Below, in pieces: positions 11,163 through 25,406 of a DNA stretch of 64,000 nucleotides. A model generated the notes under the pieces. That model was not told the origin of the DNA. It made no database searches and was given only the letters and a program-made list of their open reading frames with translations. Both the position numbers and the translations under genes were made by a program. The stretch lies in NCBI RefSeq assembly GCF_006345805.1, contig NC_043017.1, forward strand, positions 13,516,001 through 13,580,000, written 5' to 3'. How positions within the stretch are numbered: position 1 is the first letter of the stretch; the number at the start of each line of letters is the position of its first letter. Source of the DNA: Octopus sinensis. Its lineage: Eukaryota.

Positions 11163-11246
11163 GGTCCCGGGTTGAGTCGGGGTTAACCACAGTAAATAAG
11201 GTACTCAATACATAGCAGAGTAAAGTAATTTATTTTATAGAAGGAG

Positions 11247-11340
11247 CTTCTACAGGACTAGAACTGTTTCATTCAGATGAAATCTTCAGGAAGCTTCCTG
11301 AAGATTTCATCTGAATGAAACAGTTCTAGTCCTGTAGAAG
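11247..11340. repeat. Perfect 94-bp palindrome with no spacer (centre AAG|CTT)
   Basis: 11247-11293 is the exact reverse complement of 11294-11340; symmetry continues imperfectly to about 11229-11360. Confidence 0.97.
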
Positions 11341-11588
11341 GTCCTACTATAAAAAAATAAATATATATATATCTATATATAAAGTATACATACATTTGAA
11401 CATATTTCATTAACTATCACTATATAATATATATATATATATATATATGAATAAATGATAGAATGGAGTCGAACGAAGATGTTAACAAATTCCTTTACTC
11501 TCGACACATGTTTCGAAGACAGCATATTTTCATTCCATGCTAACGATAAACATAGGATAATTCATTCACCTACTTAAATATTCTTATA

Positions 11589-19497: not shown

Positions 19498-20316
19498 ATT
19501 ATTGGGCAGTTAAGGGGTTTGTTGTGCAATCACAAGGTTCTGAACTCAACCCTGTGGGACAATATCTTGGACACATTGAGCAAGTGTCTTCCAATATTGA
19601 TGAGGACAACATTCATCAATGTGTCATCAATGGATGAGTATCCCTATGCTCATAGCTGAGGGTTGAAGAGCCTCACACACAACCCATTCATTGCATCTTT
19701 AGGCTTTCTTAAAGATAAATAGGGTTGGCAGGCCACAAATCCTCCTCCAACCTTATTTACAATTGGAGTTGACTCTCTTAACCTTCATCTCCTCACATAC
19801 ACACATTAACAGTGAGATTTTATGTTCAACGTAATCCTTCTCCTAGTCTGGCTGTTTTCCCAAAATACCAAACTCAGACCACCTGTTCAATTACACAGCA
19901 GACATAGCAGTGAACACCGTAGTGCATTCACCTAGAGACAGGCTTTAACAAAAACTAAGAAGTAGCATACTTTAATGTGTATAAGGAACCCTTTTTTGTT
20001 AAAAATTTGGTTAAAGACATATCGGAGTTTCTTATACATGAATAGTATCCTAATCTCTTACAAAACCTTTTTTCTAAATTTTAAGCCCAAAAAGTTAGGG
20101 GGTTCTTTATATACATTAAAATATGGTACATCGCTTTTAAATGATCGTGTAAATATATTTGCTTGAAGTTATCATATTTCACACCATACAATGCACATTT
20201 TTTGTTAGTAAAAGTTAGTCTTATAAACTACCCTGCAGATTAGATGTATAATAATAATAATAATAATTGTGTACAGTGCTCAGGTGCACTACAACTCATC
20301 TAAAGTGTATATATAA

Positions 20317-23080
20317 TCAGGTGTAGTTTCGGCGGATTTCGGAAAGCATGAGGGCCTTAAAAGATGCAGTGTCATGGCAGTCAACAACTGACGCAGGCAG
20401 TTTATTCCATGCTTCAGCAACTCTGAGCGTGAAAAAATGTTTCCGAAAGTCATGGGAGCTGTATTGTTTTCTGACTTTGTAGGCATGTCCACGTGTGTTA
20501 GACACATGGAGATCAAAAAGGTGTTCAGTGTTGTTTGTTGTGAGGTGGTTGATAACTTTGTGGGTGTTTACCAAGTCCGTCGCCAAACGCCGGAGCTTCA
20601 GTGAATCCATGCCCAGGGAAACAAGGCGCTCAGAATATGGTAGGTGTCTGATGGAGGGTATGCGTTTGGTTGCACGTCTCTGGACAGATTCCAGGAGGTC
20701 AATGTTCTGTGCAAGATAGGGGTTCCAAACTGATGATGCGAATTCCAAGTGTGGTCGTACCATAGCTGTATACAGTTTTAAATAGATGGCTGGAGAGCGG
20801 CTAACAAAAGACCTGCTGAGTGATGCCAAGACACCCTCGGCCTTCCTGACAATCTTAGAGATATGCTTTGACCAACGCAAATCACTGCTGACAGTGATGC
20901 CTAGGTCACGCTCGCAAGAGGATTTCTTGATATCAGTGTTGTGGAGGGAGTATGTGAACGCAGGTTTTTTCTCCCAAAATGCATGGTGGTACACTTGTCC
21001 ACAGCCAGTTTCAGTTGCCAGTCTGTGATCCATTGCTGCATTGTGTCTAGGTCTGATTGCAGGAAAGAGTTGTAGACATCAGGATCTGTCCTCTTGATTT
21101 CAAGGTACAGCTTGATGTCGTCTGCATATTTCAATACTGTGGCATTCTTTAAATTGGCATCTATGTCGTTAATGTATGCCACAAACAAGAGGGGACCAAG
21201 GACAGATCCCTGTGGTACACCCGATGACATCTCATATGGTGTAGAGTGCTGTCCTAGAACTGTGACTACCTCCTTTCGGCTGAGGATGAAGGATTTCAAC
21301 CAGTTAAAAAGGTCATCCCCCACACCCATTGCAGAGAGTTTCACCATAAGCCTTTTGTGTGGCACAGAGTTGAAAGCCTTAGCAAAGTCAAGGTAGACAA
21401 CATCCACCCATGAGCCACTGTCAGTAATCTGAGTAATGTCCTCAAGGAACTCGACAAGCTGGTCACTGCAGCTGGAGTTAGGGACAAATCCATATTGTGA
21501 GGGTCGGATGAGACTGTGAGAGCTCCAGAAGTTCCAGAGTGTTTCTCTGACACACGATTCCATCAGTTTTGCAATACAGCTAGTGAGACTGACTGGGCGA
21601 TAGTTGACAGGTGATGTCGGCGGTCGCCCTTTTTGAACAGAGGAATGACACTGGCAGTTTTCCACTGCTCCGGAGTAGCACCATTGTTGAGACAGTACTG
21701 GAAGAAAATAGAAAGCTGGTGTAAAAGGAAGTGCCTGCCACGTTTGAGAAGCAGGTATGTAACTCCATCGAGACCAGGGGAGGCATAGTTGCGCTTATTT
21801 TGAAGGTGACGTCGCAGCATTGCAGGTGTAAATTCCATAGTTGTTATGGAGTTTGCTGTTAGTGATGGTGAAGATGGTACATTTTGACTTTCAACAGTGA
21901 ATATGTTTGCATAGCACTCGGCAATGAGTTCTGCGCATTCCTTGGGGTCGTCAGTGATCTGGTTTGTGTGAGGGTTGCGAAGAGGGCCCACTGGAGAGTG
22001 AGGTCTCTGCTTTGAGTGCACATATTTCCAGAAAACCTTGCTGTCAGGATTGGCTGCTATGCACTGTTCAAATTCAAGCACTGCTTTTTTTGTCACTTGC
22101 TTGAGATGGTTGGAGGATTTATTCCGCTTCTTCCTGTTGGTGTCTGATTTATGCAACCTGTATTCCCGTTCAGCAGTCCGACGTTCCCTCCTGGCAAGTC
22201 GGACCGCTGAAGTTTCCCAAATTGCCCTTTTGGGGCGGTTCTTCTTTTTTTGTTTACGTGGCACTGATGCTGCACATGCTGCCCATATTGAGTCCAGGAT
22301 ACTCTGGAGTATAGTATTCACATCTCCAGAGTTGTAGAATTCACGCCAGTTTGGGTGCTGTAGTTCAGTGTGGTACAGGTTCCAATCTGCTCTCTTCCAA
22401 TCGAAGGAAGCAGATTGGAGATGGTTCAGGTTTTTGTTGCCCGCAAGAGCCAGATTGGATGATCATAGCATGATCAGAGTCACCTAGAGGTTCCTCCGTA
22501 GTGCAATTGATAACCGCTTCAGGAGTTGTGGTGAAGAGCAGGTCCAAGGTGTTGTCGCCTCTTGTTGGAGAGGTGACTACTTGTGACCAGTTTGAGTCCA
22601 GCACAAGCTCAACAAAATCGTTTGCACTCTGTGGCCAATGGAAGGTCTCCCAATCGATCTCAGGATGATTGAAATCGCCTGCAATAAACACATAAGTGGC
22701 TGTTTTCCTGGCAGCAGCTCGGAGGACATTGCAAAGCTGTGTGTCCCGATGGTAACTTGGGGGACGATAAACAACGCCAAGCAGGAGTGTTGACATGGTC
22801 ATACGCACGTCACAGAAAAAAACTTCTTCTTGTGATTCGTTCAAATCGGCACAAGGAATTACCAAAAAATTTGAACGAACGTAGACCATCACACCACCAC
22901 CACGGCGGTTAGTGCGGTCCTTACGGAAGAGGTTGTACCCCGTAATGTTGAAAACCCCATCACAGAGTAAGGAATGCGCCCATGTTTCCGTGACAGTGAT
23001 GAAGTCAGGGTCAACACTTCTGACGTAGGCGTTGAACAATGTATTTTGTTGCATAAACTGCGAGCATTTAAGGACAACAA
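20317..23080 (-). CDS. LINE ORF2: APE endonuclease plus reverse transcriptase (4 frameshifts as assembled)
   Basis: LNARSLCNK, VTETW, RGGGV, AGDFNHP, GDSDH, FDWKRADW, SPGLDG, NYRPVSLTS, YLDFAKAFNSVPH, GVPQGSVLGP, YADD, ERDLG; shifts near 23042, 22460, 21620 and 20967; no AUG at the start. Confidence 0.9.
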
Positions 23081-23145
23081 TTTGTACCCTGCTCGCAGTT
23101 TATGATGGTGTGTAGAGGATGGCAGGTTGTCTGGCTTAGTTTCCC
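23052..23145 (-). promoter_or_regulatory. Candidate translational control element at the ORF1/ORF2 junction
   Basis: G GGA AAC (23145-23139) directly before TAA; perfect 15-bp inverted repeat 23104-23090 / 23066-23052 with a 23-nt loop. Confidence 0.5.
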
Positions 23146-23909
23146 TGAGTTGCTGTAGTCTTTTTAGTTATTGTGGGTAGAGAGCACTCAGACCAGCTGG
23201 TATCTCTCTTCCACGTTTCAGCAGTCTTGACAAATCTCCAGATTTGTCCATCTTCCCGAAGACTGAAGCTTTCCTGTAGAGCTGAGTTCCTATTCAGGGA
23301 AGCCACTACACGTAGCTTCGGACGTACATCGGACGGTAAGCCTGGGCGTGTTCGGAAGGTGGTCCGATTTTCCCGCCCAGCTTTAACTGAGGCCAGATGG
23401 TAAGAGGTTGCCTCAGTGGGGTCCGTAAAAGACAACTTGATGAGCCTAGGTTTTGGGCCAGGTCGTCCAAGGCGGATAGCACCCGTTGGGGGAACGCAGC
23501 CTAGGTCTTTGGCTGAGTTGGCAGCAAAAGCCTGAAGATCAGCCATGTCTTCTGGCACCCCAATGGCAATGACTTCATGGGTGGCAGAATCCGCGGTCTT
23601 AAATGCGACAAGAGGTACAGGTACAGGGAGGTTCTTTAGCAGAGCATTCCGATAAGACCCCTCATTGTGGAGTCCAACCTGAATGGTTGCTTTTATTCCT
23701 GCTACTTCCCCTTTTAAAGCACAGATCGATTGTTGCAGTTCTGCAAGAACCGCACTGGTCAATTGGTGTTGTTGTTGTGCTGCTGTTGCTCTGGTTGTGG
23801 TTGATTTTGTTGTTGTTGATGTTTGTTGTTGCTCTGGTTGTTGGTTGATTTTGTTGTTGCTGCTGCTCTGGTTGTGGTTGATTTTGTTGTTGCTGCTGCT
23901 GCTGCTCTA

Positions 23910-23942
<33 letters not shown>

Positions 23943-24336
23943 CTGGTTGTGGTTGATTTTGTTGTTGCTGCTGTTGCTGTTCCGCCTCCTCCACGGGAGT
24001 GGCAGGGGGAGACACAATCGTCGGTTGTGGAGGCACGCAGGCCTGACACTGAAAAGTCCAAGATTTAAGCTGAACCATCTTCCAGAGTCTATCCATCATA
24101 GCATTATGATGGCTCTTTTTTTGGCCTGGGATCTTCTGAAAGTCCGTGGCACATTGGAGGCAGACAGAGATGAGACATGTCCCACATTCGACCCAGCGAT
24201 TACGGAACGTATTTTCGGGTTCCGTACAGATGTGGCAGGTGTGATTTTCTGGGCAGTGTTCTATTTTAGAGCAGCGACCAGTCTTATCGCACGCCGCTAT
24301 GGATTTCACCATGGCGATTCTGTTGGTTCTGGTCAT
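23136..24336 (-). CDS. LINE ORF1: PHD-like finger, polyQ repeat, coiled coil, RRM-like region (3 frameshifts in the polyQ tract)
   Basis: C-x2-C-x13-C-x2-C-x4-C-x2-C-x34-C-x2-C at 24036-24237; QQQQNQPQPEQ repeats; LAELQQSICALKGEVAGIK; VIAIGVPE..RLGRPGPKPRLIKLSF; start chosen at ATG 24336. Confidence 0.8.
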
Positions 24337-25406
24337 CCGTAGAGACAGAAAATGTAAACAACAATACGATAAAAGTAAAATATAAAATATTTGTTTTTGA
24401 TTCGTTCTTTTTTGTGTATATTCCTTTTTGTTCTTAAATATTGTGTGTGTATATACACATGTTTCGTTCTTTTTTGTGTATATTCCTTTTTTTCTTAAAT
24501 ATTGCGTGTATACATAAAAGTATTTGTGCGTATAGACACGGAGAAAGTTTGTAAACAGAAATGAAATTTTTGATTTTTTTGCAGTGTAGTCCGTCACATT
24601 AAATAGTGTGATTTATTTTCACTCTGCACGTATATACATGTGTGCTACAAGTATCTATGTATGTATGTATGTCACTGCTTTATAAATTTAAAATGAGGGT
24701 GATAAATTGGATATTAATTTAATTAACATCAATTTAACACCAGTGGTCTAGCATATTAAAATCTGAAGATTCATTAAATTGTATTATATTACAATTTACT
24801 GAACCTTCAGATATATATATATATATATATATATATACGTAAGATAATTTTCCTAATATTTTAAGAGTATATCCAAAGCTTTTCAGTACAGACATCTCTA
24901 TCCATTTAAAGGTCACACCACCTTTGCAGTGCATATTTAGTGATATTGCCAGTATGATAGTTACCAGGTGCAAGTGGGTGAATCTACTATTGAATTCTCA
25001 AGTAACCAAGGAATAGTGATTTCTGGTTTATGGTTTTCTTTTATGAGTTTCCTTTTATTACAATAGCTCTTTTTAAACCATGAGGCTTATGGTTCAGTTT
25101 TTCAATTAAAATTTTAAAACTACTTTAATCTTGTTATTTGCCTGTTTTACATACAACACAACTATGCGATGACATCATTCCCCTTAAGAGTGGCTAAACA
25201 ATTTTATATGTTTAACTATGGATATTTTTGGATTATAGTTTTTTATAATACATGTGCATAATATGTACATGTGCATTTATATATTGTATCATTCTGCTAC
25301 AATAACAGACATAAGCATGTAATTCTTTTATTCTCGAGTTCTAATGAAAAATTTCCTAAAAAATTGTAATGGAGTATCCTGTATGTTGAAAACCTATATG
25401 GTCTTA

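Follow-up and report, generated by a model that had tools for sequence, protein, structure and literature searches.

A probable -1 frameshift site at the ORF1/ORF2 junction of CR1-like LINEs, preserved in a decayed copy in Octopus sinensis

The window analysed here, 64 kb (64,000 nucleotides) of Octopus sinensis contig NC_043017.1, contains on its minus strand (20248-24689) a decayed copy of a CR1-like long interspersed nuclear element (LINE). The copy consists of a 5' region, a first open reading frame (ORF1), a second one (ORF2) with APE endonuclease and reverse transcriptase (RT) domains, and an (ATT)n 3' tail. How ORF2 is translated from a bicistronic LINE RNA is a long-standing open question, and at the junction of the two frames this element carries a slippery heptamer, G GGA AAC. 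From a comparison with related junctions we think it likely that living CR1-like members make ORF2 by -1 tandem slippage on this heptamer, as an ORF1-ORF2 fusion. All coordinates are positions in the window, and all junction features lie on the minus strand.

The copy (24689-20248, about 4.4 kb) has 94% nucleotide identity across 4.5 kb to a sister copy in Octopus vulgaris OX597842.1 (L001:5044-9497). Its reading frame is split into at least six pieces in the ORF listing; the copy is dead and its cassette is a non-functional fossil. Pfam searches of ORF2 matched Exo_endo_phos and Exo_endo_phos_2 (E = 2e-14) and RVT_1 (E = 1e-36), that is, the element has the N-terminal APE endonuclease followed by the RT domain that characterize a CR1-type ORF2. 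The named RT relatives are only bird and turtle proteins at 33-38% identity, in a comparison that held no curated LINE reference set. The C-terminal part of ORF1 lies at 23136-23762 in the ORF listing, stop codon included, and the single match of a word-index protein search with it was an O. vulgaris hypothetical protein at 82% identity; a protein search with the APE N-terminus gave five matches. Both the window copy (about 20263-20245) and the O. vulgaris sister copy terminate 3' in an (ATT)n or (TTA)n microsatellite.

ORF1 ends CAG GGA AAC TAA in the window. The heptamer occupies 23145-23139 in the ORF1 frame and abuts the TAA at 23138-23136, as an earlier note made from the sequence of the window had pointed out. 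It is followed by a C-rich spacer (23135-23105), which in intact relatives is the start of a -1-frame linker (..LNLNNLPSSTHHH..), and then by an inverted repeat that is discussed below. In the assembled sequence LNARS, which stands at the start of the APE domain, is read +1 to ORF1, and after it the endonuclease returns to the ORF1 frame. Alignment with relatives locates two single-base losses here. The window lacks one base between 23133 and 23132, where it reads GCC-AGAC versus ACCTGAAC, ATCAGAGC and CTCCGAAC in the sister copy (L001), a Logan contig (L004) and an ENA contig (L006). It lacks another in a T-run at 23039-23038 (ACAT-TG versus ACATTTG in the sister copy), and after this copy-specific deletion the APE domain no longer continues in the LNARS frame. 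The earlier note had suspected an indel near 23042, and had supposed that a base is missing between 23138 and 23072 and that ORF2 is truly -1; the alignments bear out each of these. These three relatives have the missing bases; in them the frame that contains LNARS is -1 to ORF1 and runs without a stop from the heptamer.

Scanning from the upstream stop, we found no ATG in the ORF2 frame before the motif GGGVMVY in L001, L004, L006, L089 or L091, the last two being more distant relatives introduced below. The Met of this motif comes some 60 codons after the endonuclease begins, when the catalytic Asn and Glu have already been passed. That ORF2 lacks an AUG ahead of the endonuclease core, as the earlier note had seen once it repaired the frame, thus holds in the intact-frame sister copy, and the in-frame AUG upstream of LNARS that would have spoken against its proposal was not found in L001, L004 or L006. 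Stop-codon readthrough does not fit this arrangement, with ORF2 at -1 in all intact relatives and, in the window, a second 0-frame stop 11 codons past the TAA. As an aside on annotation, an ATG at 23052-23054, inside the 3' arm of the inverted repeat, opens a 229-residue ORF over most of the APE domain (22365-23054; ORF listing and Pfam). This ATG is out of frame in intact relatives, and the ATG-started ORF is an artefact of the two 1-nt deletions that would mislead ATG-based annotation.

Junction DNA was compared in progressively more distant relatives, leaving out L002 and L007, whose contigs stop short of ORF1; a further one, L003, is decayed. The window and its sister copy both end ORF1 with ACT CAG GGA AAC TAA, and L006, whose ORF2 is ~79% identical to that of the octopus element (the reference for the percentages that follow), with TCT GTG GGA AAC TGA. 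Further away, L008/L009 (~51%) read CAA CAG GGA AAC TAG, L090 (~47%) reads ATT CAG GGA AAC TTC TAA, and L091 (~39%, from assembly GCA_024449895.1) reads AAA TCG GGA AAC TAG. L060, which has a more distant ORF2, ends AGG GGA AAC plus five codons and TAG. Two lineages have A AAA AAC instead: L089 (~43%) ends TAT TCA AAA AAC TGA, and L005 (~47%, over the APE N-terminus) ends TCA AAA AAC plus five codons and TGA. The heptamer is in frame and ORF2 is the -1 frame, open from the heptamer, in every one of these relatives. ORF2 is -1 in L004 too, and the +1 frame of the window as assembled is owing to its copy-specific deletion. On mammalian ribosomes four heptamers shift most readily, and G GGA AAC and A AAA AAC are two of them (PMC5009743); these four occur at 0.00049 per position in the fetched loci.

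What is kept at these junctions is the heptamer itself. Its wobble bases are fixed (GGA and not GGN, AAC and not AAT), and the base preceding always equals the X of the X XXY YYZ pattern. Around it the ORF1 tails are unalignable between lineages, the flanking codons vary and all three stop codons are used, with the stop following the heptamer immediately in five lineages. The overlap of ORF1 and ORF2 spans only 4-19 in-frame positions in seven scored lineages, 23 in L005 and 52 in L060, which leaves little room for a shift-prone heptamer to arise there by chance. The earlier note had named a heptamer not conserved among sister copies as something that would refute its proposal, and the heptamer turns out to be retained in frame across deeply diverged lineages as flanks, stop and even heptamer type change. 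Some of these relatives have uninterrupted frames, namely L008 (ORF1 of 264 and ORF2 of 918 residues) and L089 (412 and 920 residues, with the first true Met of ORF2 at residue 208). The junction arrangement is therefore not a product of decay. Among the 80 loci of a metagenome scan, only L009 and L060 fall in the heptamer-bearing group, and most of the others belong to families with a +1 ORF2 and an AUG; scans of viral contigs and genome contigs found no relatives.

A similar pattern appears in the ORF1 proteins. A phmmer search with the C-terminal part of ORF1 against 1.84 billion representatives gave 63 homologues and 61 usable clusters (proteins P0127-P0188). Gly-Asn occurs within the last 25 residues in 41 of the 61 clusters, 0-19 residues from the C-terminus, versus 3.7% of windows of that size taken from other parts of these proteins (binomial p ~6e-44), and eight further clusters have Lys-Asn near the C-terminus. 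The residue preceding Gly-Asn is always S, Q, P, E, A, V or T, each of which has an NNG codon (41/41), and N, D, H, Y, F, C and I never precede it (0/41) though they make up 22% of tail residues. This suggests, by way of a proxy, the look that a conserved NNG GGA AAC is expected to have at the protein level. It also suggests conservation of the heptamer throughout a large LINE group, with an ORF1/ORF2 overlap of variable length.

We infer slippage, the fusion product and its low yield from the heptamer, the frames, the missing AUG and the conservation of all three. In a living element, ORF2 (endonuclease plus RT) would have no start codon of its own and would lie in -1, overlapping ORF1 in its final few codons. 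Of the ribosomes that reach the end of ORF1, a small proportion would slip back one base on G GGA AAC, tRNA-Gly re-pairing from GGA to GGG and tRNA-Asn from AAC to AAA. The shifted ribosomes would bypass the adjacent ORF1 stop and read on into ORF2, and the product would be an ORF1-ORF2 fusion of the Gag-Pol type with the predicted junction ...QGN/LNLNNLPSS... Ribosomes that do not shift would be removed by the abutting stop, which may also lengthen the pause. This stop, the conserved C-rich spacer and lineage-specific structures, such as a hairpin 4 nt downstream of the heptamer in L008, are candidate stimulators. A low shift efficiency would suffice because the ORF2 of L1 elements is translated at much lower levels than their ORF1 (discussed in PMC9115989).

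The window copy is a fossil of a -1 frameshift cassette of this kind that is probably clade-wide. A stronger proposal is that a whole clade of marine-invertebrate CR1-like LINEs would make their endonuclease and RT in no other form than an ORF1-ORF2 fusion, through -1 frameshifting where G GGA AAC or A AAA AAC abuts the stop, with no need of a canonical proximal structure. Stimulation would come from the adjacent stop and/or a trans-acting factor (e.g. ORF1p, or a poly(C)-binding protein on the C-rich spacer), and lineage-specific hairpins would tune the efficiency. We consider this stronger proposal doubtful as it stands.

Known recoding systems offer several points of comparison. GGGAAAC is the frameshift site of PEG10, PNMA3, PNMA5 and Rtl3 (PMC11299033), so that PEG10/Edr, these other genes and retroviral gag-pol share with the octopus element the same heptamer, read as G GGA AAC (PMC11299033, PMC5009743). 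They also resemble it in that the enzymatic ORF is at -1 without a start of its own, and a structural protein-polymerase fusion would be expected at a low ratio (PMC11299033, PMC5009743). The differences are that PEG10 and the other genes derive from Ty3/gypsy while the octopus host is a LINE, which lacks long terminal repeats (non-LTR), that the 0-frame stop abuts the heptamer in most lineages, and that the octopus cassette has no conserved pseudoknot or stem-loop 5-8 nt downstream. Mammalian L1 is likewise a LINE with a bicistronic RNA, a very low expected ORF2 output and no reliance on an ORF2 AUG. In L1, however, the two ORFs are either separated by a spacer or overlap briefly, with no canonical slippery heptamer, and no fusion proteins were found, whereas in the octopus family the tandem-slippage signature is conserved. 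For rat L1, reinitiation instead of frameshifting is reported in the title of a paper cited in PMC3592465.

The bacterial insertion sequences IS1 and IS3 are like the octopus family in that a mobile-element enzyme is made as a transframe fusion by -1 slippage at sites of the A AAA AAC/A AAA AAG type, sometimes with a nearby 0-frame stop and with weak or absent structure. The IS1 transposase, for instance, is made by -1 slippage at A AAA AAC. These elements differ in being DNA transposons decoded by prokaryotic ribosomes, and there is no evolutionary relationship. Frameshifting in IS3 is mentioned in PMC5009743.

An alternative to frameshifting is termination followed by reinitiation or coupling, in the style of SART1 or L1. 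The 40S subunit would stay on the RNA after the ORF1 stop and restart in -1 at a nearby non-AUG codon (e.g. in the conserved AAC AAC CUG), perhaps aided by a downstream structure such as the hairpin. The ORF1 stop lies right where the ORF2 frame opens, and in the octopus subfamilies the ORF2 frame has a conserved CUG 13-15 nt past the stop. Precedents for AUG-independent ORF2 translation exist in L1, where the mechanism is described as unknown (PMC5009743). SART1, a silkworm LINE to which the earlier note had likened the junction, shares several properties with the octopus element, as its ORF2 translation depends on ribosomes arriving from ORF1, its ORF2 opens at the ORF1 stop and an RNA structure is required downstream (PMC5972666). 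The analogy is weak, though, because in SART1 an AUG overlaps the stop (UAAUG) and the octopus family has no AUG within or upstream of the catalytic N-terminus. An AUG overlapping or adjacent to the ORF1 stop is absent from L001, L004, L006, L089 and L091 and present only in L005, as ATGA, and in L092. L005 has this stop/start overlap in addition to its in-frame A AAA AAC (L005:1344-1368), and L092 lacks the heptamer and has its AUG 28 nt past the ORF1 stop (L092:635-700). These two junctions may represent a natural transition between frameshifting and AUG-dependent expression of ORF2.

SART1 coupling does not need the slippery heptamer that the octopus family conserves, and reinitiation in general leaves unexplained why a wobble-fixed X XXY YYZ is kept in the ORF1 frame across lineages, and why L089 and L005 carry a different canonical heptamer in its place. 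A UGGGA-like reinitiation motif complementary to 18S rRNA is no explanation for these two lineages, whose site is AAAAAAC. Additionally, no non-AUG candidate is common to all lineages and the hairpin that might assist is not conserved. We regard reinitiation as an unlikely account of these junctions.

The hairpin deserves separate attention, since the earlier note had made the mechanism depend on it. It is just as that note described: the 5' arm CATAAACTGCGAGCA (23090-23104) and the 3' arm TGCTCGCAGTTTATG (23052-23066) are complementary at 15 of 15 positions, enclose a loop of 23 nt (23067-23089) and begin 34 nt past the heptamer. The 5' arm encodes HKLRA in the ORF2 frame of intact relatives, and the 3' arm consists of the (N)ARSLC codons at the start of the APE domain. 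Within the loop, GGG/UCC plus ACAA/UUGU can pair as a short apical stem. The number of non-simple 15-mers having an inverted partner no more than 60 nt away was 0.0 in block-shuffled versions of the window, and the RNA of 23160-23030 folds at -32.8 kcal/mol (z = -4.7), with none of 200 shuffles as stable. The 15-bp hairpin is a real, strong local structure and not a chance occurrence. The arm has no further copy in the window at up to three mismatches, and Rfam gave no family match, the only sub-threshold match being to a plant microRNA and reflecting the hairpin shape.

Its conservation is a different matter. The full 15/15 pairing is found only in the window copy, and the sister copy pairs 14 of 15 after a CpG-to-CpA change in the 5' arm. 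In L004 and L006 the 5' arm reads CATAAACTGAAATCA and CATGAGCTGAAATCA, with AAATCA as the inner six bases. The inner pairs are broken there and just the outer 9 bp can pair (8/9 when G-U pairs are counted). In the four-sequence alignment 83% of the cells pair, but the covariation test found no compensatory double changes in the stem and did not exceed its shuffle controls, so that neither the compensatory changes nor the conserved stem that the earlier note had looked to are seen in these sister copies. By pairwise distances L004 and L006 are separate subfamilies, each nearer to that of the window than to one another, which makes their shared AAATCA most simply ancestral. The CGAGCA of the window lineage is then most simply derived by three clustered substitutions, each of which makes a Watson-Crick pair with the constrained GCT CGC codons. 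Such clustered changes could have come about through selection that favoured a longer stem or in one template-switch mutation. The hairpin is thus probably specific to the subfamily, an ancestral weak 9-bp helix having been lengthened by the three substitutions.

More distant lineages have unrelated spacers, and the octopus hairpin is absent from L008, L089, L090 and L091. L008/L009 have a hairpin of their own, an interrupted one of 14 bp that starts 4 nt after G GGA AAC (L008:1514-1559; -16.2 kcal/mol, z = -2.7), and its position suits a frameshift stimulator better than that of the octopus one. The usual spacing between heptamer and structure is 5-8 nt (PMC11299033). With a spacer of 34-35 nt, the octopus hairpin lies beyond the ribosome during decoding of the heptamer. 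This hairpin is not the conserved frameshift stimulator. Of the proposal in the earlier note, then, recoding at the junction is supported by the -1 frame, the kept heptamer and the missing AUG, and the dependence on the hairpin is not supported.

The hairpin could still act as a functional stimulator within the subfamily of the window, at long range or as part of a pseudoknot, boosting either -1 slippage or entry into ORF2, and this would be compatible with frameshifting. The stability of the hairpin is statistically exceptional, it is retained in the sister copy save for one CpG decay, and the three substitutions relative to the sister subfamilies all create pairs. By inspection of the sequence, CAACAA 3' of the stem and ACAAC in the spacer are both possible pairing partners of the loop UUGUUG, and the region is conserved to the same degree as the catalytic domain. 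Both arms code in the ORF2 frame, however, so their conservation need not mean structure, and the clustered changes toward complementarity are equally expected from a single template switch. Together with the long spacer, the inner 6 bp missing in L004 and L006, the absence from the distant lineages and the lack of covariation, this makes such a role in the subfamily quite improbable.

Two details of the region may be added. The CAACAA (23045-23050) lies one base 3' of the stem, so that its complementarity to the loop UUGUUG would allow a possible H-type pseudoknot; it is lost in L004. The pairings CCUGC/GCAGG, ACAAC/GUUGU and UUGUUG/CAACAA, found by eye, are too short or not conserved in L004. 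Identity between subfamilies is ~0.5 in the ORF1 tail and 0.74-0.84 from the heptamer to ~+90, matching that of the catalytic domain. The conservation of this stretch is in part due to -1-frame protein coding, and an N-L-P/A motif is shared even with L089; in part it could reflect an RNA signal such as the C-rich spacer.

That nothing is programmed here, the junction features being accidents of a decayed pseudogene and active elements using an ordinary AUG lost in all sampled copies, is largely refuted and very improbable: the window copy and several relatives do carry many indels and stops, but L008 and L089 have the same arrangement with uninterrupted ORF1 and ORF2, and the heptamer with a -1 frame recurs in at least eight lineages.

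Several observations nonetheless weigh against frameshifting as the route to ORF2. Canonical eukaryotic -1 signals normally have a structure downstream, and in the octopus family, L089 and L090 no significant one lies 5-9 nt past the heptamer; nothing significant folds downstream of it in L091 either. A fold search for proximal structure 3-10 nt after each heptamer, in which the start constraint was not strictly enforced, found none that is consistent, and among all the lineages only L008/L009 have a proximal hairpin. An AUG precedes the catalytic Asn by two to three codons in L008/L009 and L090, and there is the ATGA overlap in L005, so these lineages may use AUG-dependent routes. L004 (L004:1344-1350) and the protein P0004, which make up subfamily C, read a non-canonical G AGA AAC; both may come from a single decayed locus, or the site of this subfamily may itself be non-canonical. 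The subfamily of the window is known from two copies only, and the Gly-Asn pattern in the ORF1 tails was read from proteins and not from DNA. Finally, in a neighbour-joining RT tree, which is without support values, the heptamer lineages form a grade and L005, L092 and P0015 form one nested subclade. In this subclade L092 has an AUG in place of the heptamer, L005 has both, and P0015 is known as a protein only, without its junction. P0015 is itself a curiosity, being a LINE ORF2 of this clade that is filed under a metagenome-assembled genome of Flavobacteriaceae, and its presence in that bin is probably eukaryotic contamination.

No account of -1 frameshifting from ORF1 into ORF2 in CR1-like LINEs came up in the searchable literature; older papers on overlaps in jockey, R1 and CR1 fall outside that search, so priority is uncertain. 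Two reviews of non-LTR protein synthesis (PMC3894237, PMC2881922) make no mention of frameshifting at all, and a 2016 compendium of frameshifting contains no LINE ORF1/ORF2 case. The routes to a non-LTR ORF2 given in reviews are reinitiation or coupling, internal ribosome entry sites, 2A skipping, suggestions of +1 frameshifting or readthrough in ciliate LINEs, and mechanisms that are unknown (PMC3894237, PMC2881922, PMC5405496, PMC5009743). A LINE clade that has a textbook slippery site, heptamer swaps, variable stops and AUG-using sisters provides a ready comparative system. It would test the use by LINEs of the retroviral Gag-Pol solution and the extent of frameshifting without proximal structure, as well as whether an ORF1-ORF2 fusion enforces cis-preference. 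For annotation, the ORF2 of heptamer-bearing elements should be modelled as a -1 transframe product and not from the first ATG, TTG or GTG. The interest rests with the element family, the window copy being a fossil.

The rest of the element shows a few further features. ORF1 contains a stretch rich in Cys and His, a poly-Gln repeat and a C-terminal domain. In the window copy the Cys/His-rich stretch (CPENHTCHIC...CGTC...CLQC) is without a Pfam match, and in the relatives L089 and L005 a PHD match reaches 20-23 bits, just under the cut-off of 24. In 2003 Kapitonov and Jurka reportedly described the ORF1 of CR1-like elements as having a PHD-type zinc finger and/or an esterase. The poly-Gln is encoded by an imperfect tandem repeat of 33-36 nt at 23763-23981 on the minus strand (QQQQQNQPQPE units). 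The repeat is also present in the O. vulgaris sister copy at a different copy number, and its position coincides with the break in the ORF1 frame. In the 5' region of the element a 62-nt unit is repeated 1.9 times with a 92% match (24401-24516, minus strand). Outside the element, the only long non-simple inverted repeat in the window besides the 15-bp hairpin is a near-perfect palindrome of 128 nt at 11230-11357, which has 64-nt arms that are 95% complementary, no spacer and AT microsatellites on both flanks. It may be a foldback element or one resembling a miniature inverted-repeat transposable element.

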